Positions 4,574 to 59,125 are shown, counted from the stretch's first letter. The stretch: 64,000 nucleotides of DNA from Asterias rubens (GCF_902459465.1 NC_047067.1:5704001-5768000); one strand, 5' to 3'. Notes: generated by a model not told the origin, from the sequence alone. Translations and numbers: made by a program.

Positions 4574-5468
4574 AGACTAGAGGGGTCCGTTTGATGTTGA
4601 AATTACCGTGCAAAATATACGCAGGCGAATACAAAATTGATGAAGAAGCCCACAGGCCGGATTCCAAGCTGAGGTTCGTAAAAGGCCCACTGGCTTCGGC
4701 CCGTACAGAGCAGAGATTCCTCAGTTTAAAATGGCTGCCTTCCGAGCAACTTTACATAATGTACGCGTATTTAAGTCCTTGCGATGAGCTGTGGCTGAGA
4801 AACTCTTGTACTTTAAAAGTCTTCCTTTTGCGTAGTTGGTTGCCTCCGGGTTGAATGTCAAACTGCACTGTCTATGTGACAAGGTCCTCAGTTGAGACAT
4901 ATGGGGAACCAGAAAATCGTCTTTGCTTACCATAAGGGGGCTCCCTGGAATACATGTTGAAGCTCCGAGAATAAAACTTGTCTTTTGACTGACTTAATAT
5001 TATTTGGTTTGCGGTAACACCATGTGTGTTTGCCAAGTATATGGATTTGTTCTTTTAAAAACTTGTCTTGCTTTTAATCTACTATACCGCGGAGTAGATT
5101 TTGGGAATTCGGGAAACTTCTCAGTTCTGAAAAGAACTGTCCTGCTTATTAACTACTATATCTGGGCGGAAGGGCGAAAATCAGCCGAGACTAACTTCAA
5201 GCATTAGTGGAACGAGGGGACTTCTCTTTGTAAACTTCACTGCCGCAGAGTGATTCTTAATTGGTCGTAACGTTTCGACTAGCTTGCTCTATTCATCGTC
5301 AAGAGACTGCAGCCCTTTATAATATATGCTTCGTTTTTGAAAGGGCAAGGGTGCCAAGGTAAATTTCTACCAGACCATTTCAAGGGCACCAAGGCAAATA
5401 ATGACCAGGGGCACGTAGGCAATCACCTTCTTTGCCTCCTTGAAGTATCATGTCTGAGACTGACTTAC

Positions 5469-5736
5469 CTTTGCATAAAAACTTCATGTCAGCAACATTT
5501 CCAAGGGTCAGGTAACTCGCAATAGTCGTCACCATCTTCCTATAACGCGAGTGTCTTTTCTCTCGTCCACGGCCTCTCGTAGCGGCCCTCTGCCAGACCG
5601 TCTCATGGGGGGTGGATGTGTGCTGCTCAGCTCCTGTTGTGAGCTTGATTGGTGGCAGGAAATGAAGAGGTTTGGACGGCCTGAAAGAGCGGCCGCGATG
5701 GAAGTAACGAATTTCTAGTTCACGAGTGTGAGGCAT
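5469..5736 (-). CDS. Probable first coding exon (89 codons + 1 nt) of an unidentified gene continuing beyond the left edge
   Basis: On the minus strand, acceptor ttatttttcacaatcacag lies 5 nt before ctaccATG. The open frame MPHTRELEIRY...IASYLTLGNVADMKFLCK ends at a perfect donor g|gtaagt at 5468. No downstream exon was confidently found in the window. Confidence 0.6.
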
Positions 5737-6104: not shown

Positions 6105-6503
6105 TTAAAGACACTGGACACTATTGGTAATTGTCAAAGACTAGTCTTCACAGTTGGTGTATCTCATCATATGCATAAAATAACAAACCTGTGCAAATTT
6201 GAGCTCAATCGGTCGTCGAAGTTGCGAGATATTAATGAAAGAAAGAAAAACGCTCTAGTCACACCATGGTCACACGAAGTTGTGTGCTTTCAGATGCTTG
6301 ATCTCGAGACCTCAAATTCTAAAACTGAGGTCTCGAAATCAAATTCGTGGAAAATTACTTCTTTCTCGAAAACTACGTCACTTCAGAGGGAGCTATTTGT
6401 CACAACGTTTTATACTATCAACCTCTCCCCATTACTCGTAATCAAGAAAGGTTTTATGACAATAATTATTTTGAGTAATTACCAATAGTGTCCACTGCCT
6501 TTA
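6105..6503 (+). mobile_element. TTAA-flanked MITE family A (~380-400 bp; Kolobok/T2-like)
   Basis: Ends are ttaaagacactggacactattggtaatt and attaccaatagtgtccactgccttta. The internal sequence is shared with more than 10 copies in the window. Confidence 0.9.
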
Positions 6504-7547
6504 CTGGCCGGACGTTTTGACTCTATATAGCAGAGTTTTTCTCTATCAGGCTAAACCAAAAACAAAGCCGTCGAGAAAGACTCTGCTTCTGTCGAAAAGT
6601 AGGCAATAAACTATGGTTTGCAAGAGTGTGCAAATTATCACTTAAACGATGTATATTTATAGTTACAACAAAACATTTTGAAACTGTACTTGGTAAATGA
6701 AATGGTGATTACCGGGCACCTTTCTTGACATTATTTTTTTGTAAAGATTTTTCTTTTAGTTAGTAACAAAATTTGCAACCAAATGTATACATGTACTATC
6801 AATTTTATTAGCCTTCGAGAAAGACTCTGCTAGGGTCGAAACGTCAGACCATTTACAATGTTTTTGCATTTATACCATCGGCCCATTTGGTTGGTAAGGT
6901 TTTTTTTTTGCAACAGCTAATTTTATTTTCTCATCATTTATTTGTGGTAGAAGCTCTCAAGGTTGTATGCTCCTATTTTCTGGAAAAACGAAAGATTATT
7001 AAACAAGCTTTTGTTTTTGATTGTTTTGTTTTTCAAAGTCAATAACAAATCTTTTAGCGGTCAGTTTGTAATACGTCATGGCAATAACAATTCCTCGTAA
7101 GGCCCAATTAAATACACCTGTTAGCGTCGTAGAAACAATTCTTCGTAAAGCTCAATTAATTATAACTAGGCGAAACCACTTGCGTCATTACATAGATTGT
7201 GGCTTCAGTAAAGACTTCGTTCATCATTCTGTTCACGTACATCTGTAGTTATTTTATCATAGAAATGCGTCGGTTGAAAATGACTTGTGCCATTGTTTTC
7301 ATGTACATGTATTGGTACTTGGTACTTGGTTGGTTTCCTCCTGAAAGCACCCTCTGGCCATGGGATCTTGGCTAGTAGGAGGTCAGTGACATGATCTTCT
7401 CTCACATCGGATCAGTCTTTAGCTGGATTTATCTTCCAGTGGGTGTATCCTTCCAGTGCTGTCGTCCCGTATCGTCGTTTCATAAATACCACGGAATTCT
7501 ATACCACACCCGCGTATGTCGTCAGTCTTCGTATCCTTTGCCACGGA

Positions 7548-10502: not shown

Positions 10503-13500
10503 ATGCCTTCTGCTGGTGCCATTGGTGCACCAAGCATCATTCCTCTCAGAGTACCTCAGCCTGGACGGACTGCAAATCAGATTGATACAAATACACTCAT
10601 TGAGATCAAATCAGGTACAGAAATGCTTTCGTTTTAGGGGCAACAATGAAAGTTGTCATTCAGGCTTGGAATTACACACAGACCGTGGGGGTGGTGGTCT
10701 CCGTTTTTTTCTGGTCTGTGCCCCTTCAAAAGTTTCCCATTGACTTAAAGAGTGTGTAATTTGAGGCATTGCATGGTGTGATCTATATGAGATAGGAGCA
10801 GGACAGTTCTTTAAAAACCGAGAAGTCTTCCGATTCCAAAAAACTAATCCGCGGTAGTAGAAAATAAAGCAAGACTTGAGTTCTCAAAAGAACATAATCT
10901 ATCGAAATACAATTATGCAAACCAAATACCAAATAAACGGTACATACTGATGAAAATTGTTTTACATTATCACATTTAATCGTAGGTTCTAATTTTATGA
11001 TGATTGAATTGCAGCAACCCCGGATGCCATTATCTATATATCTACCAATGGCAACCGACCTGATCCTTACCGGAAAGGAGACAAGAACACCATCAAGTAC
11101 AAAGGACCATTTCTCCTTAATGAAGGAAAGAGAGCTATCAAAGCTATTGCAGTCTCAAGGTAGTTCTTATAACTTAGAATATTATCAAAATTAGTTTGTA
11201 ATAAAAAAAATCTAAATTTGATATAATTTTGTGTAGATTTTAGGTTGGAAATGATTCCCGTGTTTTCGATGCCAAAAGGGCCTGTCAAGTTACAGATTAG
11301 ATATTAGGGCGATTGTGTGTTGATGCAGTGTAACGTACAGCATTGTTTAGTGAGAGTTATTATTATTATTATTATTATTATTTGTGGTTTATTAAAGGCA
11401 GTGGACACTATTGGTAATTACTCAAAATAATTATTAGCATAAAACCTCACTTGGTAACGAGTATAGGGGAGCTGTTGGTAGTATAAAACATTGTGAGAAA
11501 CGGCTCCCTCTGATGTAACGTAGTTTTCGAGAAAGAAGTAATTTTCCACGAATTTGATTTTGAGACCTCAAGTTTAGAATTTGAGGTCTCGAAATCAAGC
11601 ATATGAAAGCACACAACTTAGTGTGACAAGGGTGTTTTTTACTTTCATAGTTATCTCGCAACTCCGACGACCAATTGAGCTCAAATGTTCACAGGTTTGT
11701 TATTTTATGCATGTGTTGAGATACATCAAGTGGGAAGGCTGGTCTTTGACAATTACCAATAGTGTTCATTGTCTTTAAATACAGCTGCTAAAAGACGAAA
11801 TGTACAGTTTATACAAAAATAGTCATTAAAAATAATACTATATTACAAAAAAAAGAATGAAATATCAAAGATATAAACACACAGGCAACAAATTTGTGAC
11901 AGAAAAACATTAAAAAGAGCACAAAAACATTTTGATTAGATTAAAAATGCAACCATTGCTCATGATCCAAAGAGCCTCGCCACACTGATAACAGTTTTGA
12001 AGTGGGGGAAAAGGTAACCTTTTGTAAACCCAATATTGCATTTGACATAACAATTGGGTATATCTTCATAAACGTGCATGTTGGCTAGTGGCTGCAAGTT
12101 CATTACCCATATTCGCAGTGTCAAACCTCTGGGTAGCAATTGTCTGTTACTGGTGAGAAAATAATGTTTTAAATTATTATTTGTATTTTGTTTTTATGTT
12201 TCTTTTTCATCCGAGTCCCCCGACAGAGGGCATTCACCAATTGATATTTGTGACCCTCTTCATGACATGGGTACAAACACGCAATGCATAGCCTTGACGA
12301 TTTGAGCTTGCAGCAGAACTGCAGCACATAGTTTGAAAGGGTAATACTTGAGCGAATTGCCAAATACAAATAACGCAAAACTTGCAGAAAACCTATCTAG
12401 CTAGAATTCTGTGATGATTAAAAAAAAAATGAAATCCTAAGACTGCGTTAAATTTCATCCTTTATTTGATTTGCTTCCTCCAGTGACAGGCGAAGTGAGA
12501 GCCATGTTGTCAGTAAAGTGTTTTCTGTGACTTATGCCCATCCCGAGCCGGAACCGTTTGAAGATGATGATGCAAGCTTCATCATGGACTCCAGGCCCAA
12601 GAGCTCACTAAGGGTAAGCAAAGACGCTTAAGTGTTGTAGTAAAACCAATTTTAGTGGTGGGCTCTAAATCCAATTTAGTCAACTAAGGGTTCAACAAAA
12701 TTATTCGTGTTTAGATATGGGGCCATCATTGCTGCAGGGCAACCTGAGGGAATTTATTAGTTCTGGGCAAGCCTGCCCGGCACTGCCCACCGTGGCTACA
12801 ACACTGGACCCCCTTGCATAACGCGAAACGCTTCAGGGATGCTGAGGGCATGCGGACATTTTTATGTACCAAATCAAAAAACTGAGATCTGAGAAACGAT
12901 TCTTGCATGAGCCATTTCTCAGATTCAAATTTTGGGGTGAAATATTATCCAAACCATATTACATCAAAATAGTTTATACTGTCAACAGCTGCAGGGCTTC
13001 TCACCTAAGGTGTCTATAATATGGTCATTAATGGGAGACTTTCTGGGACGATAGAGGGCAGCAGACTTACCGGGTAAATCCATTGTTCTCAGAATTATGC
13101 GCATGTTCAGAACTACGTAAACAATGGAAATTTACCCGGTATGTCTGCTGCCACCTAGCGTTGGAAAGTCTCCTATTGTGGGAGTATTTACCAATCTGTG
13201 ATCTGACCTTTAACATTCCTCCTTTGAAGTTATCTGGATTTGGATATATATTCTCGACGATCTAATTAGAGCCAATCGATAAGAGAAGATGACAAGGAAA
13301 TTTCAGTTTTAGATGTGGGAGGACAACCCCAGAGATTTATTCCAGGGAAAACCCATACAGTCAAGTAGGGACTGAAAAACCCACTCCACATAGTGCCCCC
13401 GGTGGGATTCGAACCGGGGTCCCAGAGTTGGAAGGCGATGCAAGACACCACTACACCAACCTGACAGCTATCGTTATATTAGCTAATGCTTCTTTTATAT

Positions 13501-16500
13501 GCTTCTCTCATCTTTGGTTTCATTTCCCCAGAGATCTAATCAGTTTAGTGACGTTGATGACTACATTGACCTCACGAGATCAAGCAATAACTTCAATGCA
13601 TCCAAATCATATGTGAGTTGAGTGGATATTTTTTACTTTAGAAGTCTAGTTATGAACAGATGATACAGCCTGCGAAAATTTTGGCATATTTTAAAGGAAC
13701 ACGTTGCCTTGGATCGGACAAGTTGGTCTATAAAAAGCGTTTGTAACCGTTTTTTATAAAATGCATATGGTTGGAAAGATGTTTTAAAAGTAGAATACAA
13801 TGATCCACACAAATTTGCCTCAAAATTGCGTGGTTTTCCTTTTACTGTGCGAACTAACACGGTCGGCCATTTATGGGATTTTGTTTTTAGTCAACGAGGT
13901 AAAAGGAAAACCGTGCAATTTAGAGGCATGTTTGTGTGGATCATTGTATTCTACTTTTACAACATCTTTCTACCCATATGCATTTTATAACAAACGGTTA
14001 CAAATGCTTTTCAAAGACCAACTCGACCGATCCAAGGCAACGTGTTCCTTTAAGGGAGCAGCCCAAAAAAAACCATTCTAATAGACTGTATCGAATAACC
14101 TCTTTGTTGCTGTGAAAGTGGCTATATTGTAGGGCAGGCTGTATGCGCGTCTTAACGCATACATCAATGAATCACGCAGCACGCAGAATCCCCAGTTTGA
14201 TTGTTTTGGCACACAGCATGTACACGCTCACAGAAGCCATGTTTTTGGCAGGTATTTGAATGGTAATGTCATATTCGATACGGTCTTTTGGATTGGATGA
14301 GTAGTCAAGTACATGCACCATTTCATTAAAATACTCATTAAACCTGTGGTCGTGTGCGCACAAGATTCTTTTGTGCCTTGAACCTGCCTCATTAGAGCAT
14401 ATCTCAACACTCAACTTTCAGTAAAATCTCTCTCGTCAATGGGAGACTTTGGAACGCTAGGTGGCAGCATTGTTTACAATGTTCTACGCATGCACAAAAT
14501 ATTGAGAACAATTAATTTTACCCGGAAAGTCTGCTGCCACCCAGCGTCCCAAAAATGCCCCATTTCCTCACTCTCAACCCAATGGTATACCCTTAACCAC
14601 AATATAAAGATATACTTTCTTTTACGCTCTCTTCACAGCAGGTGACTGCTAATTCAGGAGCCACGGTGCCCTACAATGCATGGGGTGCTAGCACTGGTCC
14701 CCGTCAACCTCAGACAGTCGGCAACATGCAGACCAACCCAGACTACATGTTCCAGTAAGTCATTTTGTAACTCTCTATCATAATTTGTTTGGTTCCCATT
14801 ACATGACCTACCCCCCTCCCCCCCCCCCCCCCCCCCCAATCAAACTATCTCATAATACATACCTCAGAGAGATTTGCGATAATGCTGTGTGAATATCTCT
14901 TTTGAGTAGTGTTGGTTCTCAAAAGAACCGGTGGTTAACGACTCAAAGAGATATTCACACGGTGTTACCTCAAACCTCTCATAGTTATACTTCCACCAGG
15001 CAAAGTTTCAATCTACTTTACTCATATAAAAAAATACCTACATTTTGCACTCCAACCCACTTAGCCTATCTATATTGTCACCCCACCATGCAAAGTTTCA
15101 AAACAAACTTTTGCAGCATCTGCAACAGAGTCCAGCATTCTTCTGAAGACGATCAGAGCATACTGATCAAAACGTTGCGTCTTTAAGTGCCGGTTCTTTT
15201 CAGAACCAACACTACTCAAAAAGAGATATTCACATGGTGTTACCTCAAATCCCATGCAAAGTTTCAGATCCTACTTAAAACCAAATTGATTCTTGTTTTG
15301 CCTGTTTTCAGTTATCACATGCATCAACAAACGAGCCCCAGACAAGCACAGCCTCCTGTACAGTATCGGCAGCCACCACCCCAACAACAAGTGCAACCAC
15401 CTGTTATTGTTGATGTGAGTCACCTCAACCCCGTCACTCATCCCCATCTCCCCCAAGCATGGCAAAACACATCATCCCTTCATGTACACAGTTTGCAGCC
15501 ATTATTTGTTTCTCATCTGTACAAATCACTGTAACTATAGACACCTTGCATTGTCCGCCATTTTTTAATGAAACGTGCACGTGTGAAAAGCTATCACACA
15601 GTACACAGCGCATAAGTGGGGTCCAGACATGGTAAGTGGGGTCCAGACATGAAATCATTGTGTTGGTGCAACAAGGTATTAAAAAAGCGTATACGTGAAC
15701 TCAAATTTTAGAAGGTCAAAAAGTTGAATCTCATTTGAAGTGATTCGGATATTCACACAAAACTCAATGGACACTGAAATACAATTTCTGACTTTGTTTC
15801 ACAATGTAGTTACATCCTTGTTGCACGATGAATTGCATTTCATTCAATTGCATTTACATGTAAGTGTAACAGAGCTACTGCTGTCATGGGAGGATACAAT
15901 CTTGAAAGGAATTGACTTAGGAATCCGTCTCTCATTTCGATCCTTAGCCATACACAAACAACTGGCGCCCCGTCAGTGTTCCCCTACCAGCAGTACTCAA
16001 CCAGCACATCGGTACCCAGACCGTCGGTCTCTTCTACCCGACCCACGAGCAGCTCGGTCGGCAGGAGCGAGACGTTGAAGAAGTGAGGGTGATGAGAGAT
16101 GCATCCTCGTCGATGGTTAAGTCTGAGCCGAAGCCGAGTCTGATGGACACGAGCCCTGGGAAGGGGTACTGGAAGAAGCAGCTTGCTCATGTCGTGGCTC
16201 ACCTTGAGGCCTTCACCCAGAGGGAGGCGGAGTTCAGAGCGGATATCGGGAAACCCAAAATGGGAAAGGTCAGTTTGAAACAGAAATGCTTAGTCAAATT
16301 TCAGATTGTTCGCTTTCTCATGACCTTAAGTGGTGTTTAAAGGTGTGAAAAATGTTTATCTAGGTTTTTTTCTTTCTCTGTAATTTCTTTTAATAGTATT
16401 TTAAATGTTTTAATAGTATTTTGGGGGAATTTCTTCCATCAAGTATTTTGTTTTTGACTGTCTGTGTAATACCTAATGTTTGATTTTGTAAGCATGTAAT

Positions 16501-19500
16501 TTTTAGTACTACTTTGTGATACCACTGACCATGTTGTGCATTTTTAAACTAAAGTTAGTAAATAAATAAATAAATATTTATTGATTTTTTTAATTTTTTT
16601 TTTTAGATTACTTCAGCCAGTGCCGAAGACGATGGGGTGGACGTGACAATCACAATAAGTTTTGAATCACAGACTGAATCTCCTAACGTGAGGCCTAATA
16701 GGGCCTCAATGGCAAGAAAAGGTTAGTGTTACAGTTGTATTAAAGACACTGGACACTATTGGTAAATGTCTAAGACCAGTCTTCTCACTTGCTGTATCTC
16801 AACATATGCATAAAACAACAAAACTGTGAAAATTTTGAGCTCAATCGGTCGTCGAAGTTGCGAGATATTAATGAAAGAAAAAAAACACCCTTGTCACACG
16901 TAGTTGTGTGCTTTTAGATATTATTTTATGTAATGACCAATAGTGTCCACTGCCTTTAAGTCGCTTCAACAGCATTGTATTTACCAGGCATGCAACTTTT
17001 CAGCTGATCGGCTGACTTCCTCTTTTTCTTATCAAAAACAGTGCCATAGAAAATTGAAAAACACTGTACACAAGTCAAGTGTGATCGTCCATTTCCTCTT
17101 TTTTTTGCAATTAGAAAGGTGTATGTCTGATGTACACTACAGTCTCAATTTTCTTCTAATATCAAATTCACAAAGAAGGATTCTGAAGGGAAAATTGCTT
17201 ATCACTGGGTAAGGCATACCAATCTTATTTAAAGGAACACGTTGCCTTGGATCGGTCAAGTTGGTCTATGAAAAGCGTTTGGAACTATTTGTCTATGATT
17301 AAAAGTAGAATATAATGATCCACACAAGTATCACTCGAAATTGCGTGGTTTTCCTTTTACATGGTCGACTAACACGGTCGGCGATTTATGGGAGTAAAAT
17401 TTTTTACTCCCATAAATTGTCGACCGTGTTAGTTCGCAAAGTAAAAGGAAACCGCGCAATTTCGAGGCAAATTTGTGTGGATCATTGTATTCTACTTTTA
17501 AATCATCTTTCTACCCATATGCATTTTATAACAAACGGTTACAAACGCTTTCCAAAGACCAACTCGATCGATACAAGGCAACGTGTTCCTTTAAGTCCAA
17601 ACAATTTGGTGTGGAGTGACATAGAAGAGGAAATTGGATGATTGAGAACACACTCCAGCCAAACTGCCTCGCCTGTAAGAATTCAATGTAACGATTGAAT
17701 TGTGGACAAAGCATAGTATCCATACACCAATGTGTGATACACTCAACTCGCATTGTTTGAAATGCAGAATGTCTTATGTCTATGCTTATTTTATCTGTCT
17801 TGAAAATATTGGTGCATCACAAGGCAAAACAAGGATGGAGTATATCTGGCCGATTTCTCATCAAATACAAGAGCCACACAAATCTCAGTAACAAATTGTT
17901 TCCTTTCGCTTCTTCTACAGAGGCTCTACTGGCAAAGTCTCTCAGTGAATCAGGTAAATTAATGTTAGTGTAGCTTTTTAAGCAACTGAACTGAGGTTCC
18001 TGTTGTTTTACAGTCCTTTGAAGATAGTTTTTTTAACTTTTCAACTCAATTCAACTCAACATTTATTTCCATTTTATTTCAAAATGAACATCATTGAACG
18101 TAATGAACATAATAATGAAGATGGTCTATTGAACAAAGAGGTACAAAGAACTGCTAGAATAATAATTAAAGGAGACACAATAAACAAAGAGGCAAATATG
18201 GAGACATATTCAAAAGACAAATCTTGTGTAGTAATGCCTAATAAAACATTTATTGGACTTCAGAACAGAGCTTAAGTTACAACAGAATGACAGACAAGGA
18301 CGAGACAAACAAATAAAACGCTTCTCAAAGATTCTGGACACTATTGATAATTGTCAAAGACCAGCCTTCTCAATATATGCATAAACTGACAAACCAGTGA
18401 AAATTTTAGCTCAATCGGTCATTGAAGTTGTGAGATAATAATGAAAGAAAAAAAACACCCTTGTCACACGAAGTTGTGTGCTTTCAGATGCTTGATTTCG
18501 AGACCTCAAATTCTAAATCTGAGGTCTCGACATCAAATTCGTGGAAAATTACTTCTTTCTCAAAATCTACATTATTTCAGAGGGAGCCGTTTCTCACAGT
18601 GATTTATACTATCGACCTCTCCCCATTACTCGTCACCAAGTAAGGTTTTATGCTAATAATTATTTTGAGTATTTACCAATAGTGTCCACTGCCTTTAACG
18701 AGCTAGGACGGAACAAGATGGTGAACCAAAACTAAAAACTCAAAAAGGTGAACGACGAAAAAGAGAAGAAGCTCGTCAAGATAAAGCCAAGATTATTTCT
18801 TGTAAGAGTTATACATTTAAAAAAACAGATGACCCTGCCCTAGATTTGCCATTGATACTATTCCAAAGACGAGGTTCGTAAAATCCCAAGGTGTTCAGAA
18901 TAGGTGGTGGGTGCAAATGGAAGAAAAATATTGAGGTCTGTAATGTAACTCTTGTGTCTGAATGAAATACAGACTCGCCATACGGTAAAGCCAAGAAGAA
19001 ACCGATCACCAAGAAACTTGCTGCCAAGAAGAAAGCTGTGGAAGACGAGAGGTTGTCTGTAAGTATGTCTGTCGGTCTGTCTGTTTATTAATAACTAACG
19101 CAATAATAACGTCTGCCCTCACAGGTACCCATTTATACCCCTGGGTGAAGAGAAGCAGTTATAGTAAAGCATCTTGCTCCAGGACACAAGTATCATGATT
19201 GGGATTCGAACCCACACTCCATTGACTTTACCACCAGAACTTGAACTCGATGCTCTTAACTGCTCGGCCGTTACAACCTGGTTGAGTGTGATATGATTGA
19301 AACAATAGTTAGCTGTTGAAGGAGACTAAAAATTTTTAGTATCAGGTTGTCTTTGCTTTCCGGATTGATTGGGGATTTAGGTCTGGGATTTTGATTTTTC
19401 TTCTTCTCTCTTACTTTTTCATGTCTGTCATTTTCCCCAGTTTTTCTGTCTTACTATGTGTGGGATAGCATGATTCCAAGCATAATTTACTTATTTTTGT

Positions 19501-21028
19501 CGTCCCTTTTTTTATTTGCAGAAAATCCCTGGCAATTTTTAGTCCTTAGAATTGTGTTTATTTTTTTGTTGATATAGGAGGAGGACCGTCACCTTTTGAA
19601 AGAACTTGGAGCTAAGGGAGACGGGGACCCAGACAATGTTCAGGATCTTCTAGACGACGGAGCAGACCCAAATTGCGAGAATAAAGATGGCGTCCATGTC
19701 CTCATTGAAGCCACCATAAATAACCACGTGGAGTGCCTGCCTGTATTGATTGATGCAGGGTCAAAGGTCAATGCTAAAGCTTCAGTCAGGTAATGGAAAG
19801 AAAAAATTGGGTTTAAGGGTGTATCCGAATGGCGGCTACAACTACGGCTCCGACTGTTGTCAAGGGTGGTGTTAAGGAAGGTCTATGCCTCAACGTATGA
19901 TGACGCGGAAACCTAGTTGTAGGCGCCAAATCGGACACAGGCTTTTATGTAGCGTAAATCTTCCATGTGTGGCACCCAAAGTGCTTTGATGCGGTGAGAG
20001 GTCTTAATCCAAACCTTGTGAAATGCCACCCTTTCAGCTTTCACCTATAAAAAAAATCTGCAAGAAACCTCCGTTCAACAAACAAAGACGCCTTTGTTAT
20101 TCTAACTATTGCCACCAAAACATATGTTAAATGTAGTTTTCAGTGTGCTGGACTTCATTTATGGAACAATCTCCCTCTACACATCAAATAAGCTACCACT
20201 GTCTCACATTTCTCAAAACAATTCTGTTCAAATCGTCGTACATTTAATTTTCTTTTTGTTCTTCTGAGCACCTAGACACTTTATTTTGAAGGTGGTAGGC
20301 ACTATATAAACACTGTTAATACTGTTATTAAAACCTGGAGGAATTTGACTTCGCCTTTTTTTTTTTAATAGTTGAAAATGTTTGTTCTTTGAGTTTATAG
20401 CACATCCACAGGATTAACAGCTAGCATGTTGATCCAAATATTCTGACCCTTTAGGATAACAATTTGTCCAGTCATAATGGACTTTTCTCACTGTAAGTGT
20501 ATGAGTCATGTTGTCAGATTCAAGCATTCTTTTTAAGGCACCTTTGGTAATTGTTCAAGACCAGTCTTCTCACTTGGTGTATCCCAACATATGCATACAA
20601 TATTACAAACCTGTGAAAATTTGGGCACAGCTGGTCATCGGATTTGCAAGAGAATAATGAATTTGGTAATTCCTCACTGATGAGTATCTTGCATCTTCTG
20701 ACACAGGAAGGGTAACACGGCCCTCCACGAGGCAGTGCTCTTAGGACCTGACGGCCAGGAGGCCATAGAAGCCCTTCTTGAGGGAAGTGCCAACCCCAAG
20801 GCCAAGAACGCCAAGGGAGAAACGCCCTACGATCTCGCCGTCAAGAACGGCTACGACAGCATCGTTGCCCTGTTCGCCTCCAGTCTTGGCCAGGACATGC
20901 TGGATAAGATGTCCGACACCAAGAAGGGAGGCAAGGCAAAGGCCAAGAAGAAGGCAAAGGCTGAGAGTGACGATGAGGAGGAGTTTGTGGTGAAAAAGAG
21001 GAAGGCCTACAAAGAAAAACTGCCAAAG
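10503..21028 (+). CDS. DZANK1: DZANK1-like moiety (exons 1-11, 565 codons): CHB_HEX_C_1/Fn3-associated domain, conserved middle block, ankyrin repeats
   Basis: PSIIPLRVPQPGRTANQIDTNTLIEIKS, IKAIAVS, TQTVGLFYP, SPGKGYWKKQLAHVVAHL, KPKMGKITSA, EDRHLLKELG..LLDDGADPNC and NTALHEAVLLG..GETPYDLA match, in order, blocks I recall from vertebrate DZANK1. The symbol denotes family; this may be a paralog. Confidence 0.85.
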
Positions 21029-24000
21029 GTATGTTCAGTTCATGCAAATATTAAGTTCTTTTAAGAATACAGCCCTGGGGAGGCCCCGGGAGTTAATTTT
21101 TGTTACCCCAACGTTACCCTGAATACTTTCACATACTATCCCCGCCTGCAGCCCGTATTCCACTGGGTTCTGGATGAACCTTTCAAGAATAGCCCAGAGT
21201 TTTACTCACTGGTTGAAATTCGAAGCCAACAAGCTTTGCATTGCTAGAGCAGCTGGCTTGCCACTAGACCACCGAGCTAGCCTGGTGGCTAGAGACACTT
21301 TGATTTTTATGTGTAAGCAACAGTACACATCGGTGTAAAGATCAACAAATGAATTGTATCCTTTATCCTGCAAAAACAACCTCTATTGAATAAACTTTGC
21401 CGAGTACAGCAACTATTTGCTTCACAAAAAACGATGACAGCATATTATTGTTTGTGACTGATCGATTAATCATTTCTAGCTGACAACAAAATCAGTAACC
21501 CCATTTTTTCTGCCTGGTGATGAATGACAGTCTAGGTTCATTGTGCCATTTGTAAAGACCATCATGATTTTAATTTCTGTTTCTTTGTTGATTCAGGACA
21601 AAGGATCTGTTGTCGCTGCGTCATCCTTCGATGCCCAAGCGGACTCGGAGAAACTCAGAAAAGCTATGAAGGGATTAGGTGAGAAAGATACAACTCTGTC
21701 AACCTTGTTTTTAAATAATTCATGTATTACTATCTATGCCCAATGGGCGTTTATGATTGACACATACCATACCTTTCACTTAATGATTCTCCCCCTTCAA
21801 AAAGTTAATCATAAATCTAGAGAACTTTAAATTTGATTCATGACCTTTGAAAGTAGATCATTTTTATAACTAACTGAAATGGCGTCCAGTGCACATTTCA
21901 CATTTCATCCTAAGTTTCCTATCTTGTGCCTCTGGTGCTCTGCAATCTGTGCTGTTTTCTAAAGCATGCGGTGCCTGCAAGTGACTCCCTAGATAATTTT
22001 TATAATTAACTGAAATGGCGTGAAGTGCACATTTCACATTTCATCTTGAGTTTCCAATATTGTGCATTTTGTGCTCTGCAATCTGTGCTGTTTTCTAATG
22101 CATGCGGTGTCTGCCAGTGACTCCCTAAAGGTTTTTAAAAAGTACTTTAAAAAGATATTCTCATGGTGTTACCGCAACAACTTTCTATGGTATACAACTT
22201 AAAATGTACTTAATTTCAGCAATGGATTTATAAACACAGGTACGGATGAGAAAGCTATTATAGAAGTGGTCACTCAACGAGCCAATCAACAGCGACAGAA
22301 GATCTCCAAGCAATTCAAACAGATGTTTGGAAAGGTCAGTTGGTTGTAAGGGAAAGAATGCATATAGTTGGAGTTATGTTGTCTTTATGAATAAATATTT
22401 ACATGGAAGAATTGTGGCTTGCGTAGACTATGTAAGTGGATGGAATCTTGGTTTACTAAGAGTTATAACAAAGATGTAAAGATGTTATAAATTATTATAT
22501 ATTTTCTTTCCCTACCTCTGCAGGACTTGATGAAAGAATTCAAGGGTGAGCTTGGTGGAAAGCTCCTGGATGTTGTCAGCGGGTTGATGATGACCCCAGC
22601 AAAGTATGACGCCTACCAACTACACAAAGCCATCAAGGTACAATTTTAGTTCTTTGAGGAAAGAATTAAGTAGGATTTGAAACTTTGTATGGTGGAAGTA
22701 TTGTTTAGTAAAAAAAACAAACACAAAGAAAAAAATCAAGAATAAATGGAATTTGAGGCATTGCATGTTGAGGTATCAATATATATTTGGTTTGCGGTAA
22801 CACCATGTGTGTATCTACTTCCCAGGTAGATTTTGTTCTTAAGAGAACTTTCTTGCTTTATATTCTACTACCGGGGAGTAGATTTTTGGAATTCGCATTA
22901 CTTCTCAGTTCTGTAAAGAGCTGTCTTGCTTTTTAACTACTACATGTACCTAGGCAGAAGTTAGAAAATCGGCCAAGACTACTGCTCAAGCTTTTAGTGG
23001 ATCAATTTTAATTTCACCACCAAGGAGTGAAATCTTAATTGGTCTCCAAGAATATTTGTGCTTATTTTATTTCCCCCTTTGTTCTTTTTTGTCAGGGTCT
23101 TGGCACAGATGAAGCTGTTCTGATTGAGATCCTCTGCACTAGGAGCAATGCATCCATTGATGCCATCAAAGATGCTTACGAGACAGGTCAGTTTCTTATC
23201 CCTCATCCCAAGACACTGATCTCATTCAGGCCGCCATTAGTGGGTTCCCTACATCCAACTGATAAACTATTAACAATGATGAAAATGGGTCTTTTTATTC
23301 TTCATGCAGCCTTGGTTTTAAATGCATGTTAAAGAATAACAATACTTCAAAATTCTTGCATTTTACGCTGCGCACCTGCTGTTCACATTATTGACCATTT
23401 GCACCATTGCCGGAAGCACCATACACAAGCTCTGGTGTTTCTGATCAGCAGAGTGTGGGTTTGACTCCTTGTCATGACACTTGCTTAAAGTCACCTGGAA
23501 GTGGTATTTTTTCAAAATAAAGCTTTTGTCACTAATATATGTGTTTTGATGAGTGGAATGTGAATAAACAGTTAACTAAGGTTTTAAAAAATCAGTTCTT
23601 ATGTTATTTACAAATTTAAGAGTAGACCCCAACCCGAGAGGGCGCTGTTCGTGACGTCAATCGAGGCAAACTTTGCCTGTAATGCGTAGAGTAAACACAA
23701 TTGCAAAGTACATGTACGGACCAAGTCGTGAGTTTGTACGTTTTTTTTCAGTTTTTTTTTCGGCAATGCCGACCAGGTGTATTGCTGCTGAATGCAGAAA
23801 AACACTTTTTGAAATGTACCAACTCACGACTTGGACGTTCATGTACTTTGCACGTGTGTTTACTATACGCATTGCAGGCAAAGTCTGCCTCGATTGACGT
23901 CACAAAAGGGGTAGGCGGAGTCAGCCCCCCAAACAACTTTATATATATAAATCGTGACAAACAATTACTAAAAAAAATTGTTTTATTGGTCGTTAGCAAT

Positions 24001-27000
24001 ATACTCTTATGTTTGAAAGAAAAACAAATTCTATTTCCAGGTGACTTTAAGGACACAAGGGTCATGACCGGGACTTGAACTCACTCTCTCCTGAACAGAC
24101 ACACCAGAGCTTGAGTCCTGTGCTGTTATCTGCTAGGCCTCAGCATGCCACAATAACATGCCTGTAATTTCGCACTTCATCCTTGGCAGAGTTGAGATAT
24201 TCTTGACTGTCATCCCTACCTTTTCTTCCCTCTCGTAGCTTACAATAAAGATCTTGAAGAGGATGTTGCCGACGACACGTCCGGATGCTTCCAGCGGATG
24301 TTGGTGTCTGTCCTCCAGGGGGCCCGCCCGGAAGGAGATGAAGTTGATCCTGACAAGGCAGCCGCTGATGCTATGGTAAGTCTAGCATGAACGTCTGACG
24401 CCACACTTTGTGGCTCGAGAATTACGCCAGATATCTGCCTTGAGCGTACTCGCAATCGGTGTGTCATACATGGGGTGGATTTCACAAAAAGCTAAGACTA
24501 CTCTTATGAGTTACTCGTCGTAACTTAGGACTAGTCTTAAGTTTTTAATATCTCCTAGGACTAGTCCTAACTCTTTGTGAAATCCATCCCTGCTCCTACA
24601 CTATGTCACCAGCCATCTGCTTTATAGCCCTGCTAGTTTATACATCTCTCATAGCAACCCAGTCTGTTTTTAATAAGGGAATAAAAGGGTAGCGACGAGT
24701 TCTTACACGGCCGTTTAAAGCCGGCAACGTCGAATTGCCGTGTGATAAAAGCCCGAGCTGAAGTTGAGGTCCTTTATCGCATGGCAATTCGACCCAGCAT
24801 GGTTTTAAACGGACGTGTAAGAACGAGTCACTACTCTTTTATTCCCATTCATAAATGCCCTTCTGTTAAAAAACGTTAACAAAATACAATTACAGACACT
24901 TTGACAGTTGAAAATTTGAGGTTGAATTTTTATTTTTTTTATACTTTGTGAAGAGTATGTTGCGTGTGGGTTGTGTGTATTCGCGCGCATGCGCTTAAAA
25001 ATAGATTACGCTTGTGCGCTTAGAAATAGATTACGTGCTGTTACATAGCTATTAACCGCGCCTTCTGCGTGATAATCTTGCGCGCCGACACACGGAAGCC
25101 AGCCGGTTATAAACACTGGTCATTTTCAACCGATTAAACACGCCCACGTGACACGCTCTCCACCAATAGGAGTAGAAAAACTGTCTGGGGTATTTATGAA
25201 TAAATGTTTTCTTGTTCCCTGTTTGTCTTGTCTCGTTGTTTGTAGAGTGTCTGTCTAGGCTGTCTTCTACAAGCCTTGGCTTAATCTGACAGCCTCATAT
25301 TTTCTTTATTATGTTTTACATAGATTAACTATTTTCCCTCCATCCTCTGTGCTTATTGTTTTGCTTATCCATGTAATATTTTGTATACTCTTGTAGATGC
25401 ATTCACCACATCATATCATATGTTTTGTATGTTTGTTTTATGATACCAGTTGTTATCATATTGCAGGCAATTGGTAGCATATCATTAAAAAACACTTGGA
25501 TGATATTGAACAGTCAGACAGTAGGAGGGTTGACTGTGTACTGTGTAGATGCATTCACCATGTATAACTTTTCATCATATTGCAGGCTTATTGATAGTTT
25601 TTCATTACAAAGCAAAGTGGATGATATTGTATGGTTGGACATCATTGCAGTTGACTGTGTACTGTATAGATGCATTTCCCACATGAGATCATATTTTATG
25701 GTATCGGTTTTTTTCATATTGCAGGCTTATTTGTAGCTTATCATTACAAAACATAGTGAATGGTACCAATTGGTTAGACAGTAGAAAGGTTGACTGTATT
25801 GACCCCTTGCACGAGCGTCACACACGGCGACTTATGCCACGTTAACCACCATGCTGTTGGTCAGTTAGGTTTACGTGTATTAATGTCGCGTCACCTAAAA
25901 TGTGCACTTCACTGCATAACGCAGGGCATACAGTTATGTATATATAAAAATGCACCGTGAAATTGCCCACCAGTATGGCGCATTCAAGATTTTTCTGATG
26001 ATGACGTCAGGTGAAATGGGTCAATACTGTGTATAAATGCATTCACCACATGATATTATATTTGTTATTGGCATAGATATAATTACATTTTACATGTGAC
26101 AATAAAACATTATTTATACTTTATTTATTCCTAAACACAGCAGCTGTTTATTTATTGGTCAAACAGTAGGAGGGTTAAGACTTGTAATAACGGTGCAAAC
26201 TTTCTTGATCATTGTTAGTGGTTAAAGGCAGTGGACACTATTGGTAATTACTCAAAATAATTATTCGCATGAAACCTTTCTTGGTGACGAGTAATGGAGA
26301 GAGGCTGATGGTATGAAACATTGTGAGAAACAGCTCCCTCTGAAGTGCCATAGTTTTCGAGAAAGAAGTAATTTTCCATGAATTTGATTTCGAGACCTCA
26401 GGTTTAGAACTTGAGGTCTCGAAATCAACCACGCACACAACTTCGTGTGACATGGGCGTTTTCTTCTTTCATTATTATCTCGCAACTTTGATGACCGATT
26501 AAGCTTAAATTTTCACAGGTTAGTTATTTTATGCATATGTTGAGATACAGCAACTGTGAAGGCTAGTCTTTGACAATTACCAATAGTGTCCACTGCCTTT
26601 AACCCTATACAGCAACTGTGAAGGCTAGTCTTTGACAATTACCAATAGTGTCCACTGCCTTTAAGACCTCTGTGTGTACATGTACTTCCAGGCCCTCTAT
26701 AAAGCAGGAGAGGATAAATGGGGCACAGATGAGTCACGCTTCAACGCCATTCTGATCTCGCGCAGCTACGCTCAGCTACGAGCGACGTTTGAAGAATACG
26801 GGAAAATCTCTAAGAACGACATCGAGCAGGCCATTAAGAAGGAGATGAGCGGAGATGTTAAGGAAGGAATGCTGACAGTGGGTAAGTTGTAAAAATTTGA
26901 AGTAGGATTTGAAACTTTGCATGGTGGAATTATGATCAAGAAAGGTTTGCGGTCAAACCATGTCATGATAATCTCTCAGTGAGTTTGGGTGGTTTCTGCA

Positions 27001-28529
27001 AAGAACCGTAGGTTTCAACTCGACATTTGGATCAGCATACTCTGATCGTCTTCTGGAGAAGAGTATACTGATCGAAACGTCGAGTTGAAACCTACGGTTA
27101 TTTGCAGAACCACCCTAACTCAGTTAGAGATTATCATAACATGGTATTAGCGCAAACCTTATTAGATTGTAAATTTCTACTGGAGCGTTTCAAGGGCACC
27201 AAGGCAATAACCAGGGGGCATGGAGGCAATCACCTTTGTTGCCTCCGTGAAGTATTCAGGACTGACCTCTGTGTGTTTAATTGCTTATACTGCCCCTGTG
27301 GTTTTTCAGCTGCACTGGGCTTTCAGATTGGCTCAGTGCTTTCTCTGTTGCATTTCATCTTTATGGGCTCGCTTAATGATTGTTGGTAGTTTTCAGTCTT
27401 AACAATGCTTTAATAACCTTCTTTGTTTTGTCTTGCCAGTGAGATGTGTCCGCAACAAGCATAAGTTCTTTTCCGACAGGCTCCATAAGTGTATGAAGGT
27501 ACGTGCATCTTGCAACTTCTCCTCCTTAAAAAATATAATCATGCCTCTTCCCAAAACAATCGCATTGATATTTGAGTCGTTGCTTTGTAGAATTTTTGTC
27601 TGACTTCACTATTATTATTAATTTTTTTTCTGTGATCAGGGCGCTGGAACCGATGATAATACCTTGATGAGGATCGTTGTATCTCGCTGCGAGGTGGATT
27701 TGCAAAACATCAAAGCAGAATTCCAATCGGCATTCAACCAAACTCTGGGCAAATTCATCGCTGTAAGTATCCTTCACTCTGGGAGCCTCAACTATTTATG
27801 GCAGGGGTGGCTAGTGGTAATGCCATTTTTCACATGAATGCTAAATCGTGTCTTTTTGTTGAGGAATGGACATTTTACAATTTTCTAATGTACATTTTTA
27901 ATATTGCTGGAAATTACTTGTGTCTTTATTTTGTATTTTTTATTTTGTTTAATTGTGTGCAGTTGTTTTGTTTTCACATTTTACTGTGTTTTTGTGTATT
28001 GATATTTTATATAATTATTGAGAGGGTATCATTTAATTTTGAAGCTTTGGATTTAATAAAGTTGTATCTAATTTAATCTAGTGTGTAACGCACTCTCATC
28101 TCACCACTATGGTGCTGGTTCGATTCTCATATGGGACAAGAGTTGGGGAGGCCCCTTGGAGTTCCTTTTACCTCACACTTTCACACTGCCCTTCCTAGGC
28201 CCCTATGCCACAGGGTTTTCGATGGCACGGTTTTACCGCTTACCCCTACTCCAGAGTAAGGGTGAAAATTCCCTGGGGTGGCTCTTCCCCGGGGTATGCC
28301 CATTTGCCGAGGTAGATCAGGGGTAAAGTGAACCAAGTGTACTACGACTGGCCGTTATTCCCCCGGGGTTGGCCCCAGGGATAGAGTAGTGTGAAAAGGG
28401 CTTCTTTGCCACAGTAACACACTTGTACCCCTACTCATAAGAGCCATTCATTTTTCTTTCCTGATACAGGGAGATACGTCTGGAGATTACAAGAAGATCT
28501 TACTGGCCTTGGTCGGAGGCGAGAACTAA
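10503..28529 (+). CDS. DZANK1-like (zinc-ribbon-less) ankyrin protein fused to a complete annexin core; 20 coding exons, about 881 aa
   Basis: Exons: 10503-10614, 11015-11159, 12484-12613, 14639-14754, 15312-15414, 15948-16268, 16607-16721, 17921-17953, 18973-19058, 19578-19789, 20707-21028, 21597-21678, 22240-22334, 22524-22637, 23096-23186, 24239-24375, 26692-26881, 27440-27498, 27640-27762, 28470-28529. All introns are GT-AG and all phases match. The summed length is 2646 nt, one frame ending in TAA. Confidence 0.85.
11392..11778 (-). mobile_element. MITE family A copy
   Basis: ttaaaggcagtggacactattgg...caatagtgttcattgtctttaa, reverse orientation relative to the 6105 copy. Confidence 0.9.
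13029..13178. mobile_element. ~150-bp MITE with TIRs aatgggagactttc (second copy 14437-14564)
   Basis: Inverted ends aatgggagactttc/gaaagtctcctatt and a shared interior between the two copies. Confidence 0.8.
13263..13461 (-). mobile_element. tRNA(Gly-TCC-like)-derived SINE
   Basis: The minus strand reads ggttggtgtagtggt (A box)...ccttccaa...ggttcgaatccc (B box), followed by a non-tRNA body. The anticodon stem does not pair. Confidence 0.75.
13691..14053. mobile_element. TTAA-flanked MITE family B (~365 bp)
   Basis: TIR TTAA|AGGAACACGTTGCCTTGGATCGG at both ends. Long internal inverted arms. Confidence 0.9.
16740..16959 (+). mobile_element. MITE family A copy with internal deletion
   Basis: Both TIRs are present; about 170 bp of the interior is missing. 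Confidence 0.85.
17229..17594. mobile_element. MITE family B copy
   Basis: Same TIRs and TTAA flanks as the 13691 copy. Confidence 0.9.
18325..18698 (+). mobile_element. MITE family A copy
   Basis: Degenerate left TIR, intact right TIR gtgtccactgcctttaa. Confidence 0.85.
19122..19277 (-). mobile_element. tRNA-derived SINE (fragments also near 23420, 24060, 40720)
   Basis: The minus strand has gggttcgaatccc (B box) and cacccaggggtataaatgggtacc, resembling the conserved central domain of deuterostome SINEs. Confidence 0.7.
21597..28529 (+). CDS. Annexin core (exons 12-20, 316 aa, four repeats)
   Basis: Four endonexin folds are present: AMKGLGTDE, IKGLGTDE, GEDKWGTDESRF and MKGAGTDD, with the C-terminus GDTSGDYKKILLALVGGEN*. 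Subfamily cannot be assigned from memory. Confidence 0.97.
21861..22130 (+). repeat. Intronic tandem duplication, period about 138 bp
   Basis: tttttataa..aactgaaatggcgt..gtgactcccta occurs twice. Confidence 0.85.
23485..24050 (+). mobile_element. Non-autonomous TTAA-flanked DNA transposon with a THAP-like N-terminal remnant (Kolobok-like)
   Basis: TTAA|AGTCACCTGGAA...TTCCAGGTGACT|TTAA. MPTRCIAAECRKT begins at 23766. Internal inverted repeat at 23651-23734 and 23821-23903. Confidence 0.75.
24740..25200 (+). repeat. Dispersed ~460-bp repeat (second copy about 38735-39194), unclassified
   Basis: Shared aagaacgagtcactactcttttatt...gccagccggttataaacactggtca...ggggtatttatgaat. Inverted motif attcataaatgccc/gggtatttatgaat. 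Confidence 0.8.
25394..25810 (+). repeat. Diverged ~120-150 bp tandem repeat (3 copies, a fourth fragment near 26030)
   Basis: Recurrent agatgcattcaccac...atattgcagg...gttgactgt. Confidence 0.7.
26222..26664 (-). mobile_element. MITE family A copy with a duplicated 58-bp terminus
   Basis: The element spans 26222-26602. Segment 26545-26602 is repeated exactly at 26607-26664. Confidence 0.9.
26942..27160. repeat. Intronic palindrome with ~100-bp arms
   Basis: aaggtttgcg...gatcagcatactct mirrors agagtatactgatc...cgcaaacctt, with a spacer of about 20 nt. Confidence 0.85.
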
Positions 28530-35159: not shown

Positions 35160-35331
35160 CTTGTTCTATCATGTTTCTTATTGTTGTTGAAGATCAATGC
35201 CGTGTGTTTCTACACCACCAGTAGTTTGTCAAAAGTGAGAAAATAAAAGTCGTGAGAAACAACTTGTCTAACAAGCGTTTTTAAACTCTTGAGGGCGCTG
35301 TTTAAAAATCAGTTGGTGAAATTTACAAAAA
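35160..35331. promoter_or_regulatory. Compact bidirectional promoter and 5' UTR region shared by PRELID2-like and GSKIP
   Basis: A minus-strand donor (g|gtaggt at 35159) marks a non-coding first exon of PRELID2-like. The GSKIP ATG is at 35332, only 172 bp from that exon end. Confidence 0.6.
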
Positions 35332-46377: not shown

Positions 46378-46747
46378 TTAAAGAAACTGGACACTCTTTG
46401 GTAATTGTCAAAGACCAGTCTTCTCACTTGGTGTATCTCAACATATGCATAAAATAACAAAAGTTTAGCTCTATTGGTCATCGGAGTTGCGATTATGAAG
46501 AAAACACCATTGTCACACGAAGTTGTGCGCTTTCAGGTGCTTGATTTCGAGACCTCAAATTCTAAATCTGAGGTCTCGAAATCAAATTCGTGGAAAATTA
46601 CTTCTTTCTCGAAAACTGCGTCACTTCAGAGGGGGCCGTTTCTCACAATGTTTTATACTATCAACCTCTCCCCGTCACTCGTTACCAAGTGAGGTTTTAT
46701 GCTAATAATTATCTTGAGTAATTACAAATAGTGTCCACTGCCTTTAA
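46378..46747 (+). mobile_element. MITE family A copy
   Basis: TTAA-bounded with both TIRs. Confidence 0.9.
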
Positions 46748-58399: not shown

Positions 58400-59125
58400 A
58401 TTACTTTTGTCAAAGACTATTCTTCACAATTTTAAACCTCGACATACGCATATATAAAACAAAACATGTGAAAGTTTGAGCTCAATCGGTCGTCGAAGTT
58501 GCAAGATAATAATGAAAGAAAAAACACCCTTGTCGCACCATGGTCACACAAAGTTGTGTGCGTTCAGATGCTTGATTTCGAGACCTCAAATTCTAAATCT
58601 GAGGTCTCGAAATCAAATTGGTGAAAATTACTTCTTTCTGGAAAACTACATCACTTCAGAGGGAGCTGTAATCAAGAAAGGTTTTATGATGATAATTATT
58701 TTGAGTAATTACCAATAGTTTCCACTGCCTTTGATAATCCTGTTAAAGGCATTGGACACTACTACTCAAAATTATTATCAGCATAAAACCCCACCTGGTA
58801 AAGAGTTATGGGGAGAGGTTGATAGTATAAAACATTGTGAGAAACGGCTCCCTCTGAAGTGACGTAGTTTTCGAGAAAGAATTAATTTTCCACGAATTTG
58901 ATTTCGAGACCTCATAAGTTTAGAATTTGAGGTCTCGAAATCAAGCATCTGAAAGCACACAACTTCACGTGACAATGATGTTTTTTCTTTCATAGTTATC
59001 TCGCAACTCCGACGACCAATCGAGCTCAAATTATCACAGGATTGTTATTTTATGCATATATGTTGAGATACATCAAGTGAGAAGACTGCTCTTTGACAAC
59101 TACCAATAGTGTCCAGTGTCTTTAA
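58400..59125. mobile_element. Two adjacent MITE family A copies in opposite orientation (about 58400-58733 plus, 58743-59125 minus)
   Basis: Family A interior on the plus strand is followed about 10 bp later by a full TTAA-bounded minus-strand copy. Confidence 0.85.

Follow-up and report, generated by a model that had tools for sequence, protein, structure and literature searches.

One reading frame across DZANK1-like ankyrin repeats and a complete annexin core at an Asterias rubens locus: the case for a single gene

Does a starfish locus at which DZANK1-like ankyrin repeats run without a stop codon into an annexin core hold one gene or two? The locus lies in a stretch of 64,000 nucleotides from Asterias rubens (GCF_902459465.1 NC_047067.1:5704001-5768000), here called the window, and occupies positions 10503 to 28529, counted from the first letter of the window. 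A sequence-only reading had proposed that the two halves are spliced together in frame and that the product, of about 881 amino acids, could be a Ca2+-switched membrane adaptor. We find that the fused gene is very probably real. The best explanation as a whole, which we regard as likely, is one gene of 21 coding exons in which an ancient DZANK1 paralogue was fused to an annexin and in which the product would function as a tether.

The window has a G+C content of about 35-44%, no runs of N, and short exons with long introns, as in animal genomic DNA. The 107-residue exon at 15948-16268 was used as query in a protein search of a database of 1.84 billion representative proteins. This search returned a 100% identical protein, RefSeq XP_033629438.1 (P0001; Asterias rubens, 908 amino acids), and matched 176 DZANK1-family proteins. 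XP_033629438.1 was reproduced exactly by spliced mapping, giving 21 coding exons with GT-AG introns throughout, from the ATG at 10503 to the TAA at 28529. The phase-0 splice from 21028 to 21597 proposed earlier is matched exactly by this mapping.

The proposed size and exon numbering were right in part. A form of 881 amino acids does exist, as isoform X3 of A. amurensis, which equals isoform X1 minus exactly the 27 residues of exon 4, all of them within a disordered region; the full model has 908 amino acids, the ankyrin exon is exon 12 rather than exon 11, and exon 4 had been missed. Furthermore, a tandem CAG/CAG acceptor at exon 5 (14639/14642; here and below a slash within a sequence marks a splice point) gives isoforms X1 (908 amino acids) and X2 (907 amino acids), of which X2 (P0270) maps to 14642.

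At the junction, the ankyrin exon (20707-21028) stays open in frame to its end, as both the earlier reading and the frame check show. It ends in ...AAA CTG CCA AAG/gtatgt at 21028/21029 in phase 0, and reading through the donor adds 11 more codons before a TAA. The next exon follows ttgattcag/ at 21596/21597, begins with GAC AAA GGA (DKGSVVAASSFDAQADSEKLRKAMKGL), again in phase 0, and has no ATG of its own. XP_033629438.1 reads ...KAYKEKLPK/DKGSVVAASSFDAQ across the junction and contains ...KAYKEKLPKDKGSVVAASSFDAQ... The linker after the ankyrin domain is variable in sequence and always rich in Lys and Glu, and every fused protein aligned conserves its last residues. The junction peptide YKEKLPK/DKGTVV is conserved from crinoids to the acorn worm, with the consensus Y[KR]EK[LR][PA][KQ]/D[KN]G.V.

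The fused architecture, consisting of the Fn3_assoc beta-sandwich, the TQT motif, a helical motif, ankyrin repeats and four annexin repeats, is found in all five echinoderm classes and in a hemichordate, in proteins of 867-934 amino acids. RefSeq and UniProt hold it for at least 15 echinoderm species and one hemichordate, which bears out the earlier caveat that it might already sit in automated annotation. The fused models come from asteroids (Asterias rubens, A. amurensis, Patiria, Acanthaster), an ophiuroid (Amphiura), holothurians (Holothuria, Apostichopus), crinoids (Antedon, Anneissia), echinoids (two species each of Diadema and Lytechinus, and Strongylocentrotus) and the hemichordate Glandiceps. 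At least two of them are the depositors' own GenBank annotations and not RefSeq models (KAJ8032451.1, PIK56255.1), and sea-urchin LOC587473 has been modelled as fused across several annotation releases. The fused proteins form one clade, in which the hemichordate branches outside the echinoderms with 99-100% support. The fusion predates the split of echinoderms and hemichordates.

As an observation apart from the junction, the annotated S. purpuratus LOC587473 isoforms P0513 and P0515 (770 amino acids) have an alternative N-terminus without Fn3_assoc and keep the TQT motif.

The junction was compared between Asterias and the genomic loci of Patiria, Acanthaster and S. purpuratus, each mapped with its own protein. 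The intron stands at the same codon boundary and in the same phase in all of them, with lengths of 292 nt in Patiria, 314 nt in Acanthaster and 560 nt in S. purpuratus. Separate genes are unlikely at such a junction because a 3' end, a promoter, a first exon and a first intron would not fit into about 300 nt. No mini-exon is shared by the four introns; that of Asterias does not significantly resemble any of the others, and those of Patiria and Acanthaster have one short match of 28 nt in common.

Candidate elements within intron 12 were also considered. Its 568 nt contain five ATG...GT mini open reading frames in phase 0, which we reject as an annexin start exon: they are chance candidates, none is conserved in the three other echinoderms, and the mini-frames of the four introns are unrelated to one another. 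The earlier statement that this intron holds no separate ATG exon for the annexin is thereby upheld. A single AATAAA lies at 21389, where we estimate that about 0.4 would be expected by chance, and it finds no support as a conserved polyadenylation site, since such hexamers stand at unrelated positions across the four introns.

The fusion could be an artefact of gene modelling, in which prediction merged neighbouring DZANK1-like and annexin genes while the true annexin mRNA has its own first exon. An exon without ATG after the junction is usual for the first core exon of annexin genes, and the AATAAA in the intron, the stop 11 codons past the donor and the lack of any echinoderm transcript contig among the matches would all agree with it. 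Nevertheless, no stop interrupts the frame between the ankyrin exon and the annexin in any of the fused orthologues aligned (11 of 11), with a phase-0 donor in 4 of the 4 genomes mapped and with conserved last residues, whereas the unfused relatives Glandiceps P0005 and Saccoglossus P0308 have their stop 25-30 residues past the ankyrin domain. The 292-314 nt introns of Patiria and Acanthaster hold no conserved ATG exon, no separate product was found, and oysters do make an mRNA of a homologous fusion, as described below. We therefore consider such an artefact very improbable.

Separate products of the locus were searched for in several ways. The protein search with the junction piece gave no annexin-only product of 138-439 amino acids, which would have out-scored every match, and neither the family protein search nor the 90% cluster of XP_033629438.1 contained an ankyrin-only product of about 600 amino acids. 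With query residues 470-720, no junction-spanning fragment was present in the best 120 matches, which were plain annexins and one genomic ankyrin-exon open reading frame (P0397). In a scan of metagenomes and metatranscriptomes with the junction alignment, all 80 of 80 loci matched the annexin half only. Taken together, the intron, the junction peptide and the absence of an unfused product in these searches favour one gene.

Some points count against this conclusion. Neither the protein-fragment search nor the metatranscriptome scan gave an echinoderm transcript or cDNA contig spanning the junction, so the case for the starfish fusion is built on gene models and comparative genomics, of which we judge the comparative part to be strong. 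Fused models could, moreover, be carried over between species by homology-guided prediction; the conserved intron phase and the absent stop codon are, however, properties of the DNA itself.

A locus with two outputs would yield the fused mRNA and, in addition, an annexin-only protein, an ankyrin-only protein, or both. For the annexin-only protein, a promoter within intron 11 or exon 12 would give transcripts translated from Met549 or Met553 (ATG at 20897 or 20909), and these in-frame ATGs would give it a basic tail of 40-44 residues, a typical length for an annexin N-terminus. The ankyrin-only protein would arise by retention of intron 12 with polyadenylation near 21389, for which the AATAAA and the short read-through tail could serve, and sea urchin does have alternative N-terminal isoforms (the 770-residue X2). 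However, the two methionines lie in the conserved C-terminal helix of the DZANK1 family (MLDKM, with LMDRM or LMDRL in the unfused paralogues) and therefore need not be start codons. Since no such product was found for any species searched, and the polyadenylation hexamers are not at related positions in the four introns, we hold a double output to be unlikely.

What kind of protein does this gene encode? Over its full length the protein matches the Pfam families Fn3_assoc and CHB_HEX_C_1, several ankyrin families and, in four stretches, the annexin family, in agreement with the architecture of CHB_HEX_C_1, ankyrin and a complete annexin proposed earlier. In single exon frames, Fn3_assoc/CHB_HEX_C_1 was found at 11008-11160, ankyrin at 19578-19790 and 20702-21028, and an annexin repeat at 26665-26889. 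An AlphaFold2 model built on a 77-sequence alignment has a mean predicted local distance difference test (pLDDT) score of 77. The confident parts, mostly at pLDDT 90-98, are the beta-sandwich (residues ~10-105), the ankyrin domain (403-554) and the annexin core (~590-908). Most of residues 110-262 and the short, basic and flexible linker at 558-580 have a pLDDT below 50, with intermediate values for the helices at 262-282 and 304-329 and the hairpin at 337-355.

The N-terminal half belongs to the DZANK1 family. Its first domain matches PF13287 (4.4e-10) and PF13290, with pLDDT above 90 for residues 11-100, and its ankyrin domain matches Ank_2, Ank and Ank_4, with pLDDT of about 90 or more for residues 411-540. 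PDB entry 11xu contains DZANK1 as chain(s), and XP_033629438.1 aligns with chain G1 (752 amino acids) over DZANK1 residues 2-128 and 417-745 (E 1e-85). The domain of exons 1-3 corresponds to about residues 2-128 and the ankyrin part to about residues 600-745, and the alignment leaves out residues 129-416, the zinc-ribbon part. The double zinc ribbon (PF12773) is absent from XP_033629438.1 by Pfam, whereas most canonical DZANK1 proteins in the same scan have it. It was lost, or was never had, in the starfish fused paralogue.

The starfish protein shares with DZANK1 the N-terminal beta-sandwich, TQTVGLFYP, the SPGKGYW...AHL...EFRA motif with its hairpin, and C-terminal ankyrin repeats with a ...FASS.GQ..D.. 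helix. It therefore has the features of the family in the wide sense, that is Fn3_assoc/CHB_HEX_C_1, TQTxGLF[YF]P, SPGxGYW...FRA and C-terminal ankyrin repeats, and the aligned proteins, fused and unfused alike, have invariant columns in the central motif. It differs from DZANK1 in having a Pro/Gln-rich disordered stretch in place of the double zinc ribbon, and in having no stop past the ankyrin domain, where the annexin core stands instead.

In the N-terminal tree the fused genes form their own clade (99%), and the canonical DZANK1 proteins of chordates, ambulacrarians and lophotrochozoans form another (100%). The latter includes canonical DZANK1 with zinc ribbons (768-772 amino acids) from A. 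amurensis, Patiria and Acanthaster, and in A. amurensis and Patiria this gene and the fused gene are on different contigs. With a separate fused clade and a canonical DZANK1 present in starfish, the fused gene is a paralogue of DZANK1 and not its orthologue: it lacks the zinc ribbon, lies outside the DZANK1 clade and is not the sole gene of its kind. The DZANK1-like identity given in the sequence-only reading thus stands for the family and fails for orthology. Hemichordates have a third DZANK1-family gene (Glandiceps P0005, Saccoglossus P0308), of about 630 amino acids with neither zinc ribbon nor annexin, and this pair forms its own clade apart from both canonical DZANK1 and the fused genes. 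Mollusc proteins of about 600-655 amino acids without zinc ribbons were considered as orthologues of the starfish N-terminal half and rejected, because the tree places them inside canonical DZANK1.

The TQTxGLF[YF]P motif is present in 11 of the 11 fused proteins and in 11 of the 12 canonical DZANK1 proteins checked. In the form [GAS]TQT[VAT]G[LM](F/Y)(Y/F)P it also occurs in the two unfused paralogues of hemichordates; the protostome Fn3-annexins checked lack it. LC8/DYNLL-binding motifs are classically anchored by a TQT that lies in disordered sequence. In the starfish protein T252-Q253-T254 lies within a segment that AlphaFold2 leaves disordered, and it is a candidate LC8 site. A link to LC8/DYNLL is plausible because the TQT motif of the family is kept.

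The annexin half is complete. PF00191 matches it in four stretches (E 3.8e-92, residues ~605-905), and the AlphaFold2 model of the core is all-helical with pLDDT mostly 93-98. The type II Ca2+ motif, KGxGT followed after 38 residues by D/E, is intact in repeats 1, 2 and 4, as it is in four other fused proteins; repeat 3 has KWGTDE...E with the acidic cap in register. An annexin core binds acidic phospholipids reversibly upon a rise in Ca2+. By analogy, the starfish annexin end would be expected to bind acidic phospholipid membranes when Ca2+ rises.

HMMER gave full-length matches to the solved annexins A4, A5, A6, A7 and XII, and the core is closest to A4/A5/A6/A7/XII-type annexins. The canonical single-core annexins (A4, A5, A7, A11, A13, XII) likewise have four repeats of usual length, type II Ca2+ motifs and a Trp-containing repeat-3 loop, and have 47-57% identity to the whole starfish core (BLASTP). 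Their N-tails are short or of low complexity, whereas the starfish N-terminal part has about 590 residues and three folded modules. Vertebrate annexin A6 is the best-scoring solved structure for the starfish core by summed score, and the protostome relatives are named after it. Annexin A6, however, has two fused cores, A5-like and A10-like, with eight repeats and no extra domain, where the starfish protein has one core and about 590 extra residues; in the tree its halves group with A5/A4-type annexins, apart from the starfish clade.

Is the combination confined to ambulacrarians? A search for long proteins with the annexin part gave proteins of about 1050-1290 amino acids with Pfam Fn3_assoc/CHB_HEX_C_1 and annexin, most of them named 'annexin A6-like'. 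They include the mollusc proteins Crassostrea P0168/P0525 and Pecten P0158, Owenia (an annelid) P0172, Priapulus P0152 and the rotifer proteins P0216/P0234. Like the starfish protein they have an N-terminal beta-sandwich, a central helical motif and a basic linker before the annexin part; they differ from it in carrying eight annexin repeats (eleven matched in Priapulus) instead of four, with neither ankyrin nor TQT. The starfish protein is accordingly outside this family, in which Fn3_assoc and the helical motif stand directly before two annexin cores. By BLASTP the central motif reads SPGnGdfKgnirHiyAHmleFakdnrdFRlrvaePKiGr in the protostome proteins against SPGKGYWKKQLAHVVAHLEAFTQREAEFRADIGKPKMGK in starfish. 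The oyster member is found as one uninterrupted open reading frame of 3333 nt on 4.2-kb Logan contigs from three sequencing runs, within 38 blocks of the collection. These contigs are intron-free, of spliced RNA type, and the oyster fusion is thus real at the mRNA level.

In the annexin-core trees the fused ambulacrarian clade (100/99) has as its nearest neighbours both halves of the protostome proteins and not other echinoderm annexins. This sister relation is weak, with a Shimodaira-Hasegawa-like approximate likelihood ratio test (SH-aLRT) value of 83 in a quick tree, and a bootstrap of 84 with SH-aLRT 27 in a careful tree. The N-terminal tree gives a four-way polytomy, and approximately unbiased tests reject neither a clade of fused proteins with protostome Fn3-annexins (p 0.37) nor one of fused with hemichordate unfused proteins (p 0.24). 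The common modules and the nearest cores weakly suggest common descent of the ambulacrarian and protostome fusions, and a single fusion in the bilaterian ancestor, later lost in chordates, is possible.

What might the fused protein do? In mammals, specific co-purification links DZANK1 to DYNLL1 and DYNLL2 (LC8), and residues 244-317 in its zinc-finger part are the NINL-binding region (PMC4617706). A DZANK1 dimer and an LC8 dimer have been assigned as microtubule-associated proteins of the doublets in the ciliary transition zone, on the outside of the A-tubule, with a DZANK1 helix between protofilaments (bioRxiv 10.64898/2026.06.11.731632). If the starfish N-terminal module behaves like DZANK1, it would sit on a microtubule- or dynein-light-chain-associated complex, LC8 would dimerise the protein, and the annexin end would clamp a membrane in response to Ca2+. 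The result would be an LC8-dimerised, Ca2+-regulated tether from a microtubule/dynein-light-chain complex to a membrane, without the NINL-binding part. We propose this because the starfish protein keeps every DZANK1 module save the NINL-binding one, and we regard the mechanism as tentative and rather doubtful.

The earlier idea of a Ca2+-switched membrane adaptor is reasonable in that the Ca2+ sites of the annexin are intact, and its dynein side is plausible by way of the TQT motif and the dynein light chains. The link to NINL that went with it finds no support, because the zinc-finger part that binds NINL in DZANK1 (PMC4617706) is missing.

An equally simple alternative to a ciliary adaptor is a general cytoplasmic Ca2+-dependent membrane scaffold, acting in repair, exocytosis or vesicle aggregation as annexins A6, A7 and A11 do, with the ankyrin and beta-sandwich modules just recruiting partners. 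The annexin core is indeed nearest to A4/A5/A6/A7/XII-type annexins, the NINL-binding zinc ribbons are missing, and the protostome relatives without TQT and ankyrin have two cores like the membrane-bridging annexin A6. On the other hand, the beta-sandwich, TQT, helical motif and ankyrin repeats are all specifically DZANK1-like, and the known settings of DZANK1 are the basal body, the transition zone and dynein light chains. We regard this non-ciliary role as possible but less likely than not.

The tether itself meets several objections. It is conjectured throughout, LC8 binding by the TQT being a prediction, and the ciliary placement of the starfish protein is drawn by likeness to DZANK1. The transition-zone assignment of DZANK1 is that of a preprint and leans on AlphaFold fitting (bioRxiv 10.64898/2026.06.11.731632). 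Additionally, the protostome relatives lack the TQT and the ankyrin repeats, so these parts would not be needed for a common role of the family. Most far-reaching is the notion that one bilaterian-ancestral fusion, lost in chordates and LC8-dimerised wherever the TQT is kept, sits on ciliary or centriolar doublets with its annexin end clamping the membrane when Ca2+ rises. We think it improbable; if true, it would be a Ca2+-regulated link from microtubule to membrane at the ciliary base.

Our literature searches, which did not cover subscription journals, found no paper joining DZANK1 (or 'zinc ribbon and ankyrin') with annexin, and none on Fn3_assoc with annexin or on LOC587473. The architecture is known to databases, in RefSeq and UniProt entries of at least 16 ambulacrarian species, and a related form is present in dozens of protostomes. 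A database search on the architecture, suggested with the original reading as a check, thus yields its phylogenetic spread and models already in RefSeq and UniProt, so that it is not new to databases.

The usual picture of an annexin is a conserved Ca2+- and membrane-binding core that carries a short regulatory tail. In the starfish protein, the place of the tail is taken by a folded region of about 590 residues, related to a protein of the ciliary transition zone and of dynein light chains. That echinoderms and hemichordates have retained this combination since before their divergence is an argument for a joint function of the two halves. Were the mechanism true, it would be a direct Ca2+-controlled link from a microtubule-associated complex to a membrane, and the ciliated embryos of sea urchins and starfish are suited to testing such a link.

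The evolution of DZANK1 is also clarified: the mollusc proteins without ribbons fall inside the canonical clade, while the ambulacrarian fused proteins and the ribbon-less hemichordate pair are in separate clades. For annotation, dozens of protostome 'annexin A6-like' names hide a DZANK1-type N-terminal module, and half of the protein goes unmentioned in each of the names 'DZANK1-like' and 'uncharacterized', used in starfish, and 'Annexin A7', used in a holothurian.

Table 1. Features of the fused gene, in positions of the window.
Feature	Position	Strand	Basis
Whole fused coding region, isoform X1, 21 coding exons, 908 amino acids	10503..28529	+	Exact spliced mapping
Exons 1-3: start codon, Fn3_assoc/CHB_HEX_C_1 beta-sandwich (residues ~10-105)	10503-10614, 11015-11159, 12484-12613	+	Pfam, AlphaFold2, PDB 11xu alignment
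Exon 4: phase-0 cassette exon of 81 nt, 27 amino acids	13532..13612	+	A. amurensis isoform comparison
Exons 5-6: Pro/Gln-rich stretch, predicted disordered, at the position of the DZANK1 zinc ribbon	14639-14754, 15312-15414	+	Pfam, AlphaFold2, PDB alignment
Exons 7-8: conserved DZANK1-family core (TQT motif, helices at residues 262-282 and 304-329, beta-hairpin 337-355)	15948-16268, 16607-16721	+	Search, alignment, AlphaFold2
ACC CAG ACC (T252-Q253-T254), candidate LC8/DYNLL-binding anchor within GTQTVGLFYPT	16014..16022	+	
Exons 9-12 to ankyrin end: basic spacer, then ankyrin repeats (residues ~403-553)	17921-17953, 18973-19058, 19578-19789, 20707-20911	+	Pfam, AlphaFold2, PDB 11xu
Exon 12, 3' part: Lys/Glu-rich linker, 14 Lys in 39 residues, ending YKEKLPK, no stop	20912..21028	+	Donor AAG/gtatgt, phase 0
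Intron 12, junction intron, 568 nt	21029..21596	+	
Exons 13-17: annexin core, first part	21597-21678, 22240-22334, 22524-22637, 23096-23186, 24239-24375	+	
Exons 18-21: annexin core to stop codon	26692-26881, 27440-27498, 27640-27762, 28470-28529	+	Exons 13-21 form the complete four-repeat core

Several other features were observed in the window. Two interspersed repeat families with members of 170-250 nt are present, one at 6255-6508, 18449-18702 and 46498-46751 and the other at 11392-11778, 26222-26602 and 58736-58945. Identity is 87-91% in one family and 71-89% in the other, and several copies lie within introns of the fused gene. They carry similar short open frames (...SHEVVCFQMLDFETSNSK...) on both strands and are probably elements of the short interspersed nuclear element (SINE) or miniature inverted-repeat transposable element (MITE) type.

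Upstream, positions 1-5600 hold a segmental duplication in tandem that repeats about every 2.8 kb, in which 1-300 equals 2814-3113 at 100%. Each copy of about 2.8 kb contains an array of units of about 190 nt (385-1260, 3198-4068) and an open frame of 94 amino acids (1295-1576, 4103-4384) with no Pfam match.

Downstream, a gene with a GSKIP domain (PF05303) has two exons on the + strand at 35320-35601 and 40764-41126 (E 1.8e-16 and 4.2e-11), about 7-12 kb past the annexin stop codon, and could be used as a synteny marker for the locus. Finally, an open frame of 391 amino acids at 54358-55530 on the + strand is rich in Ser, Glu and Asp, has no Pfam match, and is possibly a large exon of an uncharacterised gene.

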